Origin: Monocercomonoides exilis PA203
Taxonomy: Eukaryota > Protista > Preaxostyla
Length of the DNA stretch: 64,000 nt
Assembly: GCA_001643675.2 (NCBI GenBank)
Contig: LSRY02000018.1
Span: forward strand, 1,302,001 to 1,366,000
Direction: 5' to 3'
In this document: positions 5,674 to 55,113 of the stretch, piece by piece
Numbering within the stretch: the stretch's first letter is position 1
Layout: every line of letters starts with the position of its first letter
Program-made: the position numbers and the translations under genes
Notes under the pieces: model-generated
Database searches by the model: none
What the model was told of the DNA's origin: nothing
Seen by the model: only the letters and a program-made list of their open reading frames with translations

Positions 5674-14805
<9,132 letters not shown>

Positions 14806-41700: not shown

Positions 41701-41774
41701 TGTCGCGATCCGGGATTGAACCGGAGACCTATTGCGTGTTAGGCAATTGTGATAACCAACTACACCATCGCGAC
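41701..41774 (-). tRNA. tRNA-Val (AAC)
   Basis: Cloverleaf with acceptor GTCGCGA/TCGCGAC, anticodon arm ATTGC-CTAACAC-GCAAT, T loop GGTTCAATCC, and a downstream T-run terminator. Confidence 0.95.
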
Positions 41775-47108: not shown

Positions 47109-47532
47109 TAATGAAAAATAGAGAAAAGGTGATAATCATAAGGTTAAAATCTAAAAAAATATTAAAAAAATTTTTTTATTAGAACTAATTCAAATTGAAC
47201 GAATCAGTTTTCATTGATTCTGATATTTTGCTTTGAATTGTTCTTATTTGATTTGATTTTATCAAATATTATTTGAATTGATCTTATTTCGGATCTTTTC
47301 AGAAATTATAATATCACCGTGTTGATCATCTTTTTTATTATTTTGTGCTTTTTTCGATGAAGTTTGAATATCAATTTGTGAATTAACCAGATATCTGCAT
47401 CTTTAATATATTATTTCTTCATTCACTCACTTTTTTTACAGATTCCATTTCTGATTCGGATCATGTGTTTTATAGAAGAACTCGTTCCATAGAATCAAAA
47501 AGTCTATGATCATAACAAAAAAATACTTGATA

Positions 47533-47774
47533 TGGGTGATTCTTTTTGAAAAGTCACAAATGTTTAATTATCAAATAAATCCAAAATTTCATATTTTGCT
47601 CAAATTGATGTTAACATATACCAAACTTCGCTAATATAGAATCTATTTCTGTATAATGCTATTACAAACATTCTTAAGAAGATTTGTGAGTGGAAACCGT
47701 CATTTGAGCAAAATATGAAAATTATGATTTCTTAGAAAATTAAACATTTGCGACTTTTCAAAAAGAATCACCCA
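47533..47774. mobile_element. MITE (~240 bp) with TGGGTGATTCTTTTTGAAAAGTC TIRs
   Basis: Imperfect inverted arms of ~75 bp with perfect termini. The flanks read ATAT, so the TSD is TA or AT. Confidence 0.85.
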
Positions 47775-47837
47775 TATGAATGGAGTATTCATCTATTATT
47801 GTTATTTATCGGCATTATAATTTTGCTATACATAAAA

Positions 47838-47841
<4 letters not shown>

Positions 47842-47872
<31 letters not shown>
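47842..47872 (+). repeat. Poly-T tract
   Basis: Directly visible. Confidence 0.9.
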
Positions 47873-47873
<1 letters not shown>

Positions 47874-48101
47874 ATAATTCTTAATGAGTTTTTCATATTG
47901 AAATGAAATATAACATGAAAGTTTAATATATTTTGATGATTATTTTTTAATATTACCAAAAAAAGGTTAAAAATCGAAAATTCAATTATTTGTCAAGAGT
48001 GAAAAAACTTTAAACAGTTTAACGAAATGAGAATCAGTGTTTGATACGTTCTCGCTTTCAAAATTCATTTCGGTATGATTTTAAATAAATGTTTTCAACA
48101 A

Positions 48102-49713
48102 TTATTTTTTTGGAGAAGAGGAAAAAAATACAGATGGTATTTGGAGATTTGATGCCGATGTTGATGAAGATGTTAAAGGAAGTGACACTGTAATTGAAGA
48201 AGTTGATGATGTCGGTTGATTTTGACTTTGTTGTTGCAGCGTATGAGATGATGTCACAGTCGATGAAAATGACAAAGGAGGTGATGGGAATGGTTGAATT
48301 GATAAGGATGGAAATGAATTTGTTGCATCCCACTGAAGAGGAAGGTGCCATGCTTGCGAATTGTTGCAAATGAGATCTTCATCGCTGTCAATGTTTCTTT
48401 CTTCATTCAAAGCTTGAATTCTTTTTTCATTTCTTATTTCCAGAACTTCTAAATTCGCTTTCTCTCTTCTTTCTTTGGAAATCGCAGCTGAAATAGTTCC
48501 TTGATCAGTATCCGATATATCTGAAATATGAAATATGGAAAATTGATAAATATAAAATGAAAAATTAACAAGTTCAAATTAAAAATAATGGAAAAAAAAG
48601 TGAAGATAATCCTCCTGTTTCTTCGAAAAATGAAGATATTGTGGGAGTCAATGTTTTTCCAGGATTAAGCCTATTCTTCATTTTCGCAAAATATCTGGCA
48701 TTTGCTATCTTTTTTGCTTCTTTTCTTTCCAAATATTTTTCTGTCATTTCATCCAAAAATCTTGTATTAGCTTCAGAATCTATTTCTGTAAGAGGGTTAT
48801 GAAGAATATGAAAATTTGTTAGACAACAAGCAACAGAAAAATAATCAGCAATTTTTTCTATCTCAAAAACCCATGGTCTGCGAAAAACTGTGAATAATGT
48901 TTTGAGTTGACCAAAAAACCGTTCAACAATCACTCTGAGTGAAGCCAACTCCGGAGTTCCGATTGGTTTTGTGATGATTGCTCCTAATTCAGGCTTAGCT
49001 CCGATATATGCAGAATCTGCGAATATTTTAGCTCCTCCAAGTTGTGTTTGAAACGTAGGATAGTGATCCTTAAATATAGAAAAATCGTGTGTTGAACCCG
49101 AATATATGGAACTGATCGTACTGGCTGTTCCAATTCGAGGATTCACTCCCACCTCCGCCTTTACGCAATAAATATGATGTTTGCCAGAAAAATATTTCTT
49201 TCCGTACTCTAACTTTCCCCCCGGACGATTGATTGGTGTGACAGTACAATCAACAATGATTCCTGCTTCTTCAAAACCAGCAATTCTGTCAGGACGAAAA
49301 GACGGAAATAAATGAGCCAGTTGATTTTTGACAATCGAAATAGTTGAATGGAGAAGGCGAATTGTCGAAGATTTTGAATCTTGTTTTGGTTGTGCAAGCA
49401 AATGTGTCAAAGTGTAAGATCCATGATGAAGGAAATTCAGAAGCAAAAAAAGCTGTTCATCAAACGAGTTGATGGATTAAGTACGACCTCTTCGTGGAAA
49501 ATCACACGGAGAAAGTAATCGAATCAGCATATCAAACTGTGCTCGTACAAATCCTGTCAGACGATAGAACCCAAAAGATGGGTCGATAAATTTTTGACAA
49601 GCAATATCGATGATTGATTTCTTTTCTTCTTCTTTAATTTTTTCAACATGATTGGGAATCGCATTTCTTTTCTCCACTTTTTTCAAAACTTCCAACAATG
49701 GAATTTGTGACAT
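48102..49713 (-). pseudogene. IS5/ISL2-like (DDE_Tnp_4, Harbinger/ISL2EU group) transposase, copy A, probably inactivated
   Basis: FYRLTGF, IVDCT, YFSGKHH, GSTHD, ADSAYIG and RVIVERFFG motifs. One in-frame TAA at 49477-49479 (RRGRT*SINSFDEQ) where copy B has Lys. The colinear intron 48521-48611 starts GA instead of GT. Exon 2 ends at 48102. Confidence 0.85.
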
Positions 49714-50050
49714 AATTGTTAATGACAAAAAAAGGTGACAAACAAAAATTTCCATTTTTCATGATTTTTCTTGATGATCCTTGCACCCAGAATTGTGTAT
49801 AATTGCTAAGATTCAATCAATTCAATTTAGAACAACCATAAATTGCTTTTTATGTAACTTTAATGGATTTGATTTGGCAAATACCATGTGAAGAAATAAA
49901 TATGTTTCAGTTCTATTTTTGATCATTTTTATCAATCAAAAAAAAAAATTATTTCGTATGTTTTTGAAGATTCAAAAAATTTTAAAAAATAAAAAAATGG
50001 ATGAATTTTGGAATTGGATAAAGTGATGAGAGTGAAATTTGAGATAACTA

Positions 50051-51715
50051 GTCGGGGTGGAAACCCGAGCCACTTTGATCAAAATTTTCAAATAAAGTTT
50101 TTTGATCATGATGGAGAAGGTTATACCCTCTTTGGCCAGGCTGTTGGCTACAAGTGAAATGCGTTCAATGGAAGACGATACTATCAAAGCAATATATGCC
50201 TATGACATTTAAAACTTTTCTGAGCGAGAAATTGAGGAGTGTAAATTAATATCACGTGGATCACTGCAAAGAGCTATCAAAGCGAGAAACGAAGGTAGAA
50301 AAATAAGAAAGTGCGGAAGACCGACTCTTTTTACCATTTCAGAAGAGGATGATTTTGAACAGCAAATATTGGAAGAGGTGCGCAATGGAAAAAATCCAAC
50401 AAAGAAATTCATAGAGCAAATGGTTTCAATGCATTGTTTTTATATTTTTATTTAACAATTTTTTTTATTTTGGCCAACGAGTTGTTATTGAAGAAGCGAA
50501 AAGATGATGAAGATGTAAAAAAGGTGGACAAACATTGGATTGATAGATTTTTAACCAGACATCCAAAAATTGAACTTGTCAAGCCTAAAGCTTTACCAAT
50601 TGGACGTGTGGCGCACACATGCAAAATGGTTTTGAATCCATTTTTTAATTGTTATGATTTGTATATACAGCAAATAAAACCTCTACCACTGTTGATTTTT
50701 AACATGGACGAAACATCAACATCCTTTTCCGACTCGGAGCAAGATTTTGTAGCATCATCTTCTCCTACTCCTTCATCTTTTATTGCTGAGCCATCTCTTC
50801 CATCTTCAACCACCATCGTATTTATGACTAGTGCGGATGGCTGCAGATATATTACTCCAGTTCTGATCCCATTTAAAACAATTCCCAACGAATATAGACT
50901 TGCTACAACCTCACTTGAGGTTTTTATACCAACTGCAAATGGACATCTAACTTCAAATCTATTTCTGGAATTATTTAGAAAATATTTTCTGCCGGAAATA
51001 TTGAAAAAAAAGAATCAGATTGGAGAAAATTTTCGACATGCAGCTCTTATTATGGATGGAGGAGTAGGCCATTTTCAGGAAGATATAAAGAAAGAATGCA
51101 GAGATAACTTAATTGATTTGATAAAATTACCATCTCATTCATCCCACATTCTCCAGCCAAACGATCAATTCATTTTTGCCAATATGAAGCGCGTTTTTTC
51201 AAAATCAAAGGATTGTGGCATGGTTACATCAGCATCTGCGAGAAGAGAAGCCTTTGTGAAAGTTCTGAAAAATGGAATAGCTGCAGCAAGCTATCCAGAT
51301 ACGATTATCGCATCATGGAGAGTGAGCGGAATGTGGCCAGTGAATAAAGAAGATATTCTCAAGCACATTCCAGATTCACCTCCAGAATGGGCTCAATCCG
51401 AAATTGAACCAAAAAAAGCTCCTGAAGGTGCAACTTATGGAGCAGTTTACAAAGCTTCCGATAGGCTTGAAAACCTTTTTAAATAAACAATTTTTGATCT
51501 TTGTTATTCTTCTTTATTTTTCATTATCTTTCTTTTTTTTCAATTCAATTGAATATTTTCAACATGTGCAATGAAGAAATATTGTATTTTTTTTATTATT
51601 TTGCATAAATAAAAACTCAATTTGAAAAAATTTAACAAAAAATGGAAAAAATATTTTTATAAATGAAAAGATTACTGGCTCGGGTTTCCTCCCTGGATCG
51701 GGTTTCCTCCCCGAC
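50051..51715 (+). mobile_element. pogo/Fot1-like DD35D DNA transposon with TIRs and TA target duplication
   Basis: TA|GTCGGGGTGGAAACCCGA ... TCGGGTTTCCTCCCCGAC|TA, enclosing a DDE_1-type transposase gene. Confidence 0.9.
50108..51486 (+). pseudogene. pogo-type transposase (HTH, GRP linker, DDE_1), 2 exons, with a premature TAA
   Basis: Exon 1 (50108-50422) has CGRPTLF but an in-frame TAA at 50210. Intron from 50423 to 50472 or 50481. Exon 2 has WIDRFLTRHP, IFNMDETS, LIMDGGVGH and LPSHSSHILQPNDQ (35 residues between D2 and D3). Confidence 0.85.
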
Positions 51716-51717
51716 TA

Positions 51718-52685
51718 GAACTTGATTGATTTGACTGCGTCAAGTGGCATTAGATCGGTCAACATCCAATAAGATCGATCTAATACCATTAAGATACAGT
51801 CAAATTGGATGTGACTCAGTCACATCCGATCATTTCCATTCTGGGTGTCATGATCAAAATATTTTTGTAAAAAAATTATTATTAAAATCAATAAATTTCG
51901 TTATATTTAATATCATTTTGATTGATTTTAACAATTTTTAATTCTGAATGGTTTTTTATTTTGTATGTTTTTTAAAATTATTGATATTTCACCGAAAAAC
52001 CTGGAAATTCTTATTGTTTTTGTTTGATAATGATTATTGGTGAATTATAAAAATGATATAAGTTAATTTCATTTCATTTTTCAATAATTTGAACAAGTTT
52101 CATTTGTTTTTTTCATTTCACTAATATTTTCAGAAAAAAGAAAAAATTCAAAAAAAGAAGCTTTCGAATCATATATTCTTTTTATTTTTTATTCGAAATG
52201 AAAAAATTTCAAAAAATGATTGATTAATAAACACACAACAGTTAAGAAAACACAAAAAAGTTTAATTTTTCATAAATGTTGAAAATTTACAAAAAAAATG
52301 AATATGAAAATGTAAAAAATGTATTATATTAACAATTTTATTTCGATTATTGTTGGAAAAATTTGTTGCAGAGTCGCAATGATAAATAAATCAAGTTTTA
52401 AAATTGCTGAATTAAACAAAGAAAACAACAAAAAATCAAACGAATATCAAAAAAATGTATTTTAAACAATAACATATTGAAAATTCAACGTTTATGAACT
52501 TGTAATAATAAAAATATTAATAAAACAAAAAAATGTTCGATCACAATTCGTGATCATAAAAATCACAATTTCGCCCTTGTTGAGATTGAGAGAAATTCGA
52601 TTAAAAATAGAGAAATTCGATAAACCAGACAAAAATCGATTTGACTGAGTCACATTTTCGCGACTCTGTCAAATCAATAAAGTTC
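51718..52685. mobile_element. Non-autonomous ~970-bp TIR element, TA|GAACTT...AAGTTC|TA
   Basis: 24-bp TIR GAACTTGATTGATTTGACTGCGTC versus GAACTTTATTGATTTGACAGAGTC (reverse complement of the right end). Subterminal inverted GTGACTCAGTCA (~51811) / TGACTGAGTCAC (~52642). Confidence 0.85.
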
Positions 52686-52889
52686 TACTAGAACCTTTTG
52701 TGTTTTATTTGATGCATCCGCAAAAGATATATTAACACTTAATAATATCGATTGAAAACCAAATAGAATCAAACTTATTTGATTTGATTCAATAACATTC
52801 ATATTCACAAATGTTGGTTTCGTGATCATTAATAACAAAATTTCAATATTTGGTTTTGATCAAACGAAAGTTGTTCTTATTTTTTTCTG

Positions 52890-54413
52890 ATGTCACATTC
52901 AAATTTTTTGGACGTTTTGAAGAGTGTGGAGAGGAGAAATATTATTCCACAACGGAATGAATCACTTCAAAAGGAAGAAAAAATTTCCATCATCAAAAAA
53001 GCTTGTGACTTTTTTGATGATCCTGTTTCTTCTTTTTTTCGACTTACTGGATTCACAAAAGAAGAATTTGATTTTCTCATTCACATTCTTCAAATGGAAG
53101 TTCCTCATCGTCGAGGGAAACTGAAAGCAATCAACAATTTTGATGAACAGTTATTCTTGTTACTCACTTTTCTTCATCACGGTTCAACAACACTCACACT
53201 TTTATTATCCACACCTTTCTATGAAACTCAAAACGCTCTTGTCAGACTTCTTCACAGTATTGTTTCTCATATCAGAGCTCCATTAGCAGATTTGTTTTTG
53301 ACATTTCGCCCTGACAGGATTGAAGTGATGAAGGAGGTTGGAATTGTTTTGGACTGCACAATCATTCCCATCAACAGACCTGGAGGTCGATTAGACTTTG
53401 GGAAAAAGTTTTTTAGTGGGAAACATCACACATATTGTGTGAAAGCTGAGGTTGGAGTCAATCCCAAAGTTGGTACAGCAAGTACTATCAGTGCAATTCA
53501 TTCTGGCTCAACTCATGACTTTACAGTCTTTAAAGATCATTATCCTCAATTTTTGGATCGTTTGGGAGGGGCAAAAATATTGGCTGATTCGGCTTACATA
53601 GGAGCGAGACCTGATTTGGCTGCAATTATCACCAAACCAGTGGGAACACCAGAGCTAGCTACTCATCGAGTCATCGTGGAACGGTTTTTCGGTCGTCTGA
53701 AGACCCTCTTTTCAGTTTTTCGAAGACAGTGGCCATTTGAAGTTGAAAGGGTTGCTGATTATTTCTGTGTGGCTTGTTGTTTGACCAATTTTCATATATT
53801 ACGAAATCCATTGACAAGAGCAGATGGGGAAGCAAATCAGCGTATTTTGGACAACTTGTGGACGGAGCATTTACAAAAACAAAAAGCAAGACAAATAGCG
53901 AATGAGAGATATCGAATAAAATTGAAAAATAGATTGAATCCGAGCTTGTCAATTACACCCACAATAACTACTTTACACGCACAAATAGACAGTTTATTAT
54001 TCATTACTTTACCCATATTTATATTCATTATCTTTTATTTGATTTTTTTTGATAACTCTTTCAACCATTATATTTTCTCTTTTTTTTATTCAGATATTTC
54101 ACAGAATGAAAAGGAAGGCGAACTGAAAAAGAAATGTGAAGAAGAAAAGAAAGAAAAGCGAAAAATCGAAGAAAAAGAAGAAAAAGAAGAAAAAGATAGA
54201 AATGAAACGAAAAGGATTGATTTGGAAGAAAATGATAGTGACGAAGATGATAATTCTATGGCCTGGTGTTTACCAGGTCAGTGGAAATCAATCCAACATT
54301 CTTCTGCATCTTCTTCATCTCCTTTTCCTTCAACTCCACGTTCATCAGAAGCAGAAAAGGCGAAAAGAATTACACCAAGTCCTTTAAGGCTTCTTTTGGA
54401 ACAAAGAAATTAG
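52890..54413 (+). CDS. IS5/ISL2-like (DDE_Tnp_4) transposase, copy B, apparently intact, with one likely intron (53992-54093)
   Basis: FFRLTGF, FDEQLFLLLTFL (HTH_Tnp_4-like), VLDCT, FFSGKHH, GSTHD, LADSAYIG and HRVIVERFFGRLK. The Phe/Ile-rich stretch in the ORF corresponds to a 102-nt GT-AG intron. Confidence 0.9.
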   Translation: MSHSNFLDVLKSVERRNIIPQRNESLQKEEKISIIKKACDFFDDPVSSFFRLTGFTKEEFDFLIHILQMEVPHRRGKLKAINNFDEQLFLLLTFLHHGSTTLTLLLSTPFYETQNALVRLLHSIVSHIRAPLADLFLTFRPDRIEVMKEVGIVLDCTIIPINRPGGRLDFGKKFFSGKHHTYCVKAEVGVNPKVGTASTISAIHSGSTHDFTVFKDHYPQFLDRLGGAKILADSAYIGARPDLAAIITKPVGTPELATHRVIVERFFGRLKTLFSVFRRQWPFEVERVADYFCVACCLTNFHILRNPLTRADGEANQRILDNLWTEHLQKQKARQIANERYRIKLKNRLNPSLSITPTITTLHAQIDSLLFITLPIFIFIIFYLIFFDNSFNHYIFSFFYSDISQNEKEGELKKKCEEEKKEKRKIEEKEEKEEKDRNETKRIDLEENDSDEDDNSMAWCLPGQWKSIQHSSASSSSPFPSTPRSSEAEKAKRITPSPLRLLLEQRN

Positions 54414-55039
54414 TTTTTTTTTTTTTTTTTTTTGTAATTTTTACCTATTTTTCAATCATTCACCTTTTTTTAAAAAAAAAAATAAAAGAGAATAAAAAAT
54501 ATAACTTATTGTATGTATGTCATAAAATATTTATAAAAAATATTGAAATGAAACAAAAATCGTTGTTTCCCCTTGAGTTTAATATGAAATAAACGTTGAA
54601 AAAGTATTATCAATGATCCTGATTTTAAATAAAACGTCACAGCTGTTAATAGCTCAAAACATATAAAAATAATCATAAGAATTAATATAAATGCTCAATC
54701 GCAAGGATATCATGTGAAAGAATTAAAAATAAATGCAAACCTTTTGAACTTTAAAAAAACTCAAAATTTGCTGAAAACAGATCAAAACACCATGGATTTT
54801 ATATAGATGCATAAAATATCAAAGTTTTGTGAATAATCGAAACGAAAGAATCAAATAAAAGAAGAAACAAAAAAATAACAAGATCAGTTTTTCAAACATT
54901 TCGTAATTCCTATTTTGGACCAAGTGAGATTGAGAAAGTTCCAATTTGATTGAATCAATTCCAAAAAAGGAGGTTGACATCTATGTTGTAAAATCAAATT
55001 TATTTTTTGCTCAAGATTCGAAAAACGTCTACTAAACAA

Positions 55040-55113
55040 GTCGCGATGGTGTAGTTGGTTATCACAATTGCCTAACACGCAATAGGTCTCCGGTTCAATC
55101 CCGGATCGCGACA
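55040..55113 (+). tRNA. tRNA-Val (AAC), identical to the 41701-41774 copy
   Basis: Same 74-nt cloverleaf followed by a T-run terminator. Confidence 0.95.

Follow-up and report, generated by a model that had tools for sequence, protein, structure and literature searches.

The tRNA-Val locus and its elements

The window analysed here is a 64,000-nt stretch of the genome of Monocercomonoides exilis PA203 (contig 12:1302001-1366000 in the numbering of the 101-contig genome), and the subject is a family of DNA transposons of which two autonomous copies, termed A and B, lie within it. Copy B (52690..55030, + strand) is an intact element of 2,341 bp with the ends AGAACC...CGTCT. Its last base is 9 nt before the start of a tRNA-Val(AAC) gene (55040..55113, + strand), which was identified using ARAGORN and Rfam, is intact beside the insertion, and had been missed in the first-pass annotation of this DNA. 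Taken with the genome-wide data below, the locus is best explained by a cut-and-paste family of the PIF/Harbinger-ISL2EU-Spy (PHIS) superfamily that duplicates a 3-bp ANT target, inserts upstream of tRNA genes and stacks there in one orientation; a probability of about 0.8 is assigned to this reading as a whole.

Copy B is the innermost member of a stack for which the tRNA-Val gene is the target. It is flanked by the triplet ACT on both sides (52687..52689 and 55031..55033, + strand); the left triplet is common to the right end of the next element, and the right one stands 6 nt ahead of tRNA-Val. Second in the stack is X1 (51717..52686, + strand), a non-autonomous family member of 970 bp with the ends AGAACTT...AAGTTCT and a terminal inverted repeat (TIR) of about 24 bp. 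Approximately 25 full-length copies of X1, with 76-99% identity, are present in the genome, and its first 140 nt also head autonomous elements. Outermost is a pogo/Tc5-like element (50051..51715, + strand; Pfam DDE_1 and HTH_Tnp_Tc5), which is flanked by TA and carries 25-nt TIRs, the arms of which (50048-50072 and 51694-51718) are 92% complementary. The order from tRNA-Val outward is therefore copy B, X1 and the pogo-like element, with one common triplet or dinucleotide at each junction.

A second tRNA-Val(AAC) gene (41701..41774, - strand) is free of elements upstream and was used as the reference for an empty site. The two genes are 100% identical, lie 13 kb apart in inverted orientation, and have upstream flanks that are 78% identical. 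The ancestral upstream flank of the occupied gene (49984..50045, + strand; 62 nt) is now 5 kb from that gene. Its best non-self match in the window (78% identity, E 7e-9) is 41843-41780, the 64 nt directly upstream of the unoccupied gene. When copy B, X1 and the pogo-like element are taken out in this order, each together with a single copy of its duplication, what remains immediately ahead of the tRNA is GAGATAAC-TA-AACAA. By this comparison the unoccupied gene provides a paralogous, not an orthologous, empty site against which the whole 5-kb stack can be read.

Copy A (47181..49914, - strand) is a dead autonomous element of 2,734 bp with the ends AGAACTG...TTAGTTCT and without an adjoining tRNA gene. 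The same AAT duplication is found at its left end (49915..49917, - strand; ATT on the + strand) and at its right end (47178..47180, - strand). On the minus strand TAGAAC is located at 49915-49910, 202 nt ahead of the ATG at 49713, and in the nearest relative, which is 84% identical, homology extends from TAGAAC to 47180. The 3' end that had been suggested near 47180 is thus correct, with AGTTCT terminating at 47181. The gene is a pseudogene: it has an in-frame TAA at 49476-49478, GA replaces the splice donor, and the transposase is split into open reading frames (ORFs) at 49477-49755 and 48574-49446 (- strand). The element is also interrupted by a nested foldback miniature inverted-repeat transposable element (MITE) of about 250 bp (47530..47779, no strand assigned), which belongs to a separate family, is flanked by TA and has ends beginning TGGGTGATTC. 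This MITE is not present in the closest relative of copy A, and more than 20 genomic copies, with matches on both strands, were found.

Copies of B with 96-98% nucleotide identity are found on contigs 56, 34, 22 (two) and 8, and a frameshifted sixth is on contig 33. Homology spans window positions 52684-52689 to 55030-55034 and the flanks are unrelated on both sides, so that the end of copy B is set at 55030 and not near 54960, the weak candidate proposed earlier, which was wrong by about 70 nt. The transposase ORFs of the six young copies differ at 7-10 of 1,059 nt, mostly at synonymous positions (for example, nine synonymous changes to one non-synonymous). In copies with 92% and 85% identity, replacement changes outnumber silent ones and stops are present. 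The low and mostly synonymous divergence of the young copies indicates recent spread from functional sources, and the substitution pattern identifies the family as recently active and under purifying selection.

Two further observations were made on the young copies. At contig 22:114481-118000 (positions 6481-10000 of locus L033) two B copies with identical 1,059-nt ORFs lie in direct tandem, which suggests either two insertions in very recent succession or unequal crossing-over. Contig 8:1062000-1071999 (locus L034) has in common with window positions 51668-55034 a 3.4-kb composite, consisting of a pogo-type end, X1 and B, at 93% identity; the segment may have been duplicated, or two stacked elements may have been mobilised together through their outer ends.

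Transposase gene, termini and classification

The ORFs of copy A and copy B (the latter at 52890-54413, + strand) match Pfam DDE_Tnp_4 with E values of about 1e-20, in agreement with the first-pass annotation; the PF13359 score is 73.8 bits against a cut-off of 24.8. The DDE_Tnp_4 domain of copy B lies in exon 1 (52890..53991, + strand), with D155 at 53352, D233 at 53586 and E264 at 53679. These residues align with D, D and E in 115 relatives and are separated by 77 and 30 residues (D-77-D-30-E), which confirms the 30-residue spacing counted earlier. A single GT...AG intron of 102 nt (53992..54093, + strand) is predicted from comparison across subfamilies. In most subfamilies the transposase frame meets a stop at codons 368-397, and several have a conserved downstream ORF in another frame; in all of them a donor GT (or GC) is found at the same position, a YnAG acceptor follows about 100-130 nt later, and after it comes the C-terminal tail. 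The predicted exon 2 (54094..54413, + strand) encodes a K/E-rich stretch and then the tail motif NSxAWxLPxQWKS...FP...SSS, which is kept in every subfamily of 56-100% identity. Pfam searches of the N-terminal 148 aa and of the tail exon returned nothing significant. The protein has approximately 470 aa, and an element of about 2.34 kb comprises a 200-nt leader and one gene. No partner ORF fits into this length, and no Myb, SANT, YqaJ or THAP domain was detected by Pfam, as the earlier view of a single-gene element had it.

At least 115 transposase matches are present in the 82.3-Mb genome. In copy B, TAGAAC is located at 52689-52694, 201 nt ahead of the ATG at 52890, and the distances in both window copies thus agree with the value of about 200 bp reported before. 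Among 30 genomic relatives with 62-100% amino-acid identity, 24 carry TAGAAC at a distance of 200-203 nt ahead of the ATG. This fixed distance argues that the boundary is a property of the family and not a chance occurrence. The first-pass annotation had staked its proposal on other copies having this boundary in common, and in that respect it survives. The leaders are colinear as described, with conserved blocks TAGAAC, TTGA.TTGATTGAAT, TGGGT and GATCA, at an identity that is only modest (67% mean column identity across five leaders of about 200 nt). The right ends have AATTCG-N5-GTTCT conserved across subfamilies, and alignment of the left with the right ends gives TIRs that reach 18-24 bp, a length found in X1 and in L012-type elements.

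The junctions follow the pattern x-A-N-T-AGAAC ... GTTCT-A-N-T-y. On the left side x differs between copies (T, G, A, C), whereas the A ahead of GAAC never changes; on the right side it is y that varies at unique flanks (A, G, T, C), and within a subfamily the T of GTTCT stays the same. Of 19 non-redundant left flanks, 18 have an A ahead of the variable N, and this A recurs in the duplication on the right side. In 19 of 26 end pairs the A-N-T triplets, mostly ACT, are the same on both sides; the non-default triplets AAT (three pairs, among them copy A), AGT and ATT are among the matching ones. Because of this distribution of invariant and variable flank positions, together with the matching pairs, comparison of the junctions shows a 3-bp A-N-T duplication at T|ANT|A and element ends 5'-AGAAC...GTTCT-3'. 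Duplications of 2 bp (TA), 3 bp (NTA) and 5 bp (TANTA), and of 1 bp (N) with the ends TAGAAC...GTTCTA, were considered and dropped, since only ANT fits the asymmetry of the flanking positions. The base before GAAC belongs to the element, and the earlier suggestion of TA targets, or of TAGAAC termini without a target-site duplication, does not hold. 'TA|GAAC' is a one-base mis-parse of the Pangu-type junction T|ANT|AGAAC, a caution for the classification of similar elements.

The groups of the PHIS superfamily differ in their duplications: TWA in PIF/Harbinger, AT at A|AT|T in ISL2EU, none in Spy, ANT in Pangu (Repbase 'Harbinger2'), CWG in NuwaI, and TNA at C|TNA|G in NuwaII (Han et al. 2015, PMC4482050). 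Pangu elements have TIRs beginning with AG or GG, a DDE-only transposase, and a second ORF without a known motif, which some Pangu families lack (PMC4482050, Table S3). By its transposase and termini the M. exilis family is a member of the PHIS superfamily. On its termini, compared with the published description of the group, it is of Pangu type and not a new ISL2-like family; this assignment follows from the ANT duplication, the AG-starting TIRs and the DDE-only transposase. The ends AGAAC or AGACC fall within the Pangu range of TIRs starting with AG or GG and 11-40 bp long. Likewise Pangu-like are the type of transposase (DDE_Tnp_4 or DDE_Tnp_1_6), the length range of 2-3.5 kb, and the single ORF, which occurs in some Pangu members (for example Pangu-1_PInf, 2,729 bp). 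The M. exilis family differs from Pangu in having no second ORF, for which 2.34 kb is too short, in its C-terminal tail, which is predicted to be spliced on and contains a W-rich motif, in the 30 residues between the second D and the E (about 37-45 in Pangu), and in its insertion at tRNA genes with orientation bias and stacking, which is not reported for Pangu. With PIF/Harbinger it has in common the DDE_Tnp_4 transposase, a 3-bp staggered cut and short TIRs, but PIF/Harbinger duplicates TWA, needs a Myb/SANT partner that has no counterpart here, and is not reported to target tRNA genes.

None of the four ISL2EU features (AT at A|AT|T, GG TIRs, a THAP transposase, a YqaJ gene) is found in the family. 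Spy elements are without a duplication and insert at AAA/TTT, whereas ANT triplets flank the M. exilis elements and the flanks are not AAA/TTT. The CWG duplication of NuwaI, the TNA duplication at C|TNA|G of NuwaII and TIRs starting with GG(G) are likewise lacking. Bacterial IS5 (ISL2 group) is not indicated, the best NCBIfam IS5 match being NF033581 (transpos_IS5_4) with 27.8 bits against a cut-off of 140.

A complete HMMER search against 1.84 billion representative sequences gave 683 matching proteins, of which 115 usable relatives were placed in a FastTree tree. The proteins of the D77-D(28-32)-E type fall into a single clade with a Shimodaira-Hasegawa-like support of 99. Other relatives have 34-45 residues between the second D and the E, except P0057 (32), which is located outside the clade. 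The short spacing, rightly called unusual in the first-pass annotation, thus marks a sub-lineage, which comprises proteins of M. exilis and Blattamonas nauphoetae together with unnamed ones from metagenomes. Outside the oxymonads, the nearest relative with a name is P0013 of Phytophthora nicotianae, in an element T[ATT]AGACCTCAGG...TGAGGCCT[ATT]A with AGACC...GGCCT ends. The P0013 gene (locus L046) lies inside two nested candidate TIR pairs, an outer one of AGAATCCTT (13 nt, perfect; 364-376 and 2586-2598) and an inner one of AGACCTCAGG (689-718 and 2496-2525); the inner pair has the matching ATT duplication, and the outer pair resembles the AGAAC ends of M. exilis.

A new IS5/ISL2-like lineage, apart from all described eukaryotic groups and either duplicating TA or ending in TAGAAC without a duplication, is regarded as very improbable. 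TAGAAC is indeed common to nearly all copies, the stack junctions read GTTCTACTAGAAC and can be parsed as a shared TA, the D-30-E proteins have a clade of their own, and the IS5_4 match is far below its cut-off. Such a lineage leaves unexplained, however, the A in 18 of 19 left flanks and its duplication on the right, the variable base after the right-hand T, and the AAT at both ends of copy A. Furthermore, ANT is the duplication of both Pangu and IS5-type elements (PMC4482050), the closest named relative has T[ATT]AG... ends, and neither a THAP or YqaJ domain nor an A|AT|T target is present. What stands of the candidate family first proposed is that it is genuine, multi-copy and single-gene; its status as an undescribed IS5/ISL2-like group does not, because the termini match those of the described Pangu group. 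Its structural type, that of Pangu, had been described before, and the new features are the D-30-E clade, the single gene, predicted to be spliced, and, above all, the apparent targeting of sites upstream of tRNA genes.

Element insertion upstream of tRNA genes

At loci mostly selected for a nearby transposase, an element end lies 1-10 nt upstream in 15 of 16 distinct tRNA genes with 14 different anticodons. The occupied genes are those of tRNA-Val, Tyr, Asn, Thr, Phe (two), Leu, Gly, Gln, Pro, Asp, Trp, Lys and Ile, and one intron-containing tRNA of uncertain identity. Their upstream sequences are unrelated, yet the first element is always no more than 10 nt away. Right ends account for 11-12 of the tRNA-adjoining ends and a left end for one; two belong to pogo-type MITEs. 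The elements nearly always have the same direction as the tRNA and form head-to-tail stacks with one ANT per junction. Same-strand arrays with a spacing of about 2.3 kb lead to tRNA-Pro on contig 22, to tRNA-Thr on contig 1 and to tRNA-Lys on contig 62. The last of these spans 47 kb with at least nine transposase matches, all on one strand, and ends at an intron-containing tRNA-Lys.

As a sample drawn independently of transposons, the 63 tRNA genes with the highest scores in a genome-wide Rfam search were compared with the transposase matches by coordinates. A transposase match is located within 10 kb upstream on the same strand in 10 of the 63, against 0.44 expected (a 23-fold excess). In four genes a match lies upstream on the opposite strand, in one downstream on the same strand and in three downstream on the opposite strand, and several of these matches belong to a facing tRNA. 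One X1 copy, at C5:237611-238581 (- strand), is located 7 nt from a tRNA at C5:237532-237603 (- strand).

Intron-containing tRNAs were found at several array ends (Tyr, Lys, Ile and one called 'stop'; L032 4799-4884, L038 3290-3370, L041 7456-7536 and L042 9448-9533). ARAGORN without the intron mode misses or mis-calls such genes, and several array ends seemed free of tRNAs until they were rescanned.

An origin of the arrays by tandem or segmental duplication and unequal crossing-over, instead of serial transposition, is considered the least probable account. It would suit the adjacent B copies with identical ORFs on contig 22 and the 3.4-kb composite at the contig 8 locus. Neighbours within arrays, however, come from different subfamilies with 56-68% amino-acid identity, each unit has its own TIRs and ANT triplet, and the same young element is present at six loci with unrelated flanks.

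Several points weigh against directed insertion of an ANT-duplicating family. The figure of 15 of 16 is biased by the way in which those loci were picked, and 7 of the 26 duplication pairs disagree between their ends. The B copy at locus L032 is irregular, being inserted 5 nt inside the end of an older element with an apparent 4-bp AGTT duplication on both sides. Copy A stands alone as a clean insertion without a tRNA beside it, inverted and some 130 nt upstream of the ancestral tRNA-Val flank. Rfam and ARAGORN revealed no RNA polymerase III (Pol III) gene next to it, such as a lost tRNA might represent, and no element ends were found in the 5.4 kb between copy A and the minus-strand tRNA-Val. 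Copy A weakens the case for targeting to the extent that targeting is not absolute. The D-30-E relatives in Blattamonas nauphoetae, a member of a second oxymonad genus (32% identity; loci L043-L045), are represented by only 1.2-1.3 kb of fragmentary common DNA, and the three loci have neither AGAAC ends nor an adjacent tRNA; they neither support nor exclude conserved targeting. Finally, every insertion recreates the T|ANT|A target at its two ends, so that part of the stacking could stem from sequence preference alone.

The last point is the core of an account that dispenses with any tether: the transposase would prefer T|ANT|A, the elements would in this way target each other, and the survivors would be harmless insertions upstream of tRNA genes. 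The palindromic target rebuilt at each junction agrees with this account, as do the solo insertion of copy A at A|AAT|A away from a tRNA start and the presence in stacks of a pogo-like family with a plain TA target. A palindrome cannot set orientation, yet arrays of five to nine or more elements all follow the direction of the tRNA, and right ends make up 11-12 of the 12-13 tRNA-adjacent ends of the family. Selection alone would also fail to produce the single-digit-nucleotide precision with which the first element is placed within 10 nt of tRNAs with unrelated upstream sequences. This account is judged unlikely, although less so than either of the two alternatives discussed above.

Proposed mechanism and known systems

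In the model proposed for oriented insertion upstream of tRNA genes, the Pol III initiation region would be the place to which integration is guided. With every further insertion the ANT nearest the tRNA would be used again and older elements would be pushed outward, like a conveyor belt. Insertion of this kind would account for the uniform orientation, the common junction triplets and the order of tRNA-Val, copy B, X1 and pogo-like element in the window. The preference for a palindromic T|ANT|A may add to the stacking. More speculatively, and judging from its conservation among the predicted proteins, the C-terminal tail motif may tether the transposase to a Pol III factor, for instance TFIIIB, and may take the place of the Myb-like partner found in ordinary Harbingers. 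The full version of this model, with Ty3-like tethering to the Pol III initiation complex through the AWxLPxQWKS tail, conveyor-belt stacks of up to a dozen or more elements, and convergence of the pogo-like family on the same sites, is offered tentatively, its chances being put slightly below even.

In the reviews consulted (PMC5911963), position-specific targeting of Pol III genes is documented for retrotransposons only, yeast Ty3 among them, and the full-text literature searched yielded no description of a cut-and-paste transposon that is directed to sites ahead of tRNA genes. The M. exilis family resembles yeast Ty3 and Dictyostelium elements such as NLTR-A, TRE5-A and DGLT-A in being inserted a few bases from the tRNA start, at many tRNA genes, in a compact and gene-dense host (PMC5911963). 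NLTR-A inserts 2-6 bp upstream of the mature coding sequence and Ty3 at the Pol III start site (PMC5911963). Ty3 and the Dictyostelium elements are retrotransposons, inserted by an integrase or through target-primed reverse transcription, whereas the M. exilis family has a cut-and-paste DDE transposase; a TFIIIB tether has been demonstrated for Ty3 and TRE5-A and is only conjectured here. Dada elements, the only DNA transposons that the reviews connect with small RNA genes, insert inside these genes by sequence recognition (PMC8869645). They are similar in being DNA transposons at multicopy small RNA genes, tRNA genes included, but belong to another superfamily and use a specific site inside the gene; the M. 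exilis elements lie upstream and the gene itself is left intact, the occupied and the empty tRNA-Val having the same sequence.

Targeting of Pol III genes is a textbook way in which mobile elements spare compact genomes. If the model is correct, such targeting can evolve on completely different integration machinery, and a single protein of about 470 aa would provide a small system for the study or engineering of tethered DNA integration. Repeats make up 46% of the M. exilis genome and those listed as 'unclassified' 35% of it, according to a paper that describes no transposon family (PMC8767320); the family would then account for part of this unclassified fraction.

The pogo/Tc5-like elements have the TIR TAGTCGGGG(A/T)GGAAACCCGA. 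The element and short foldback derivatives of it are also placed with a TA 2-6 nt ahead of tRNA genes (Gln, Ile), and pogo-type sites were located at window positions 50051-51715, at about 2382-2450 of locus L031 and at about 9380-9447 of locus L042. Their placement suggests that the niche upstream of tRNA genes is occupied by a second superfamily as well, one unrelated to the first.

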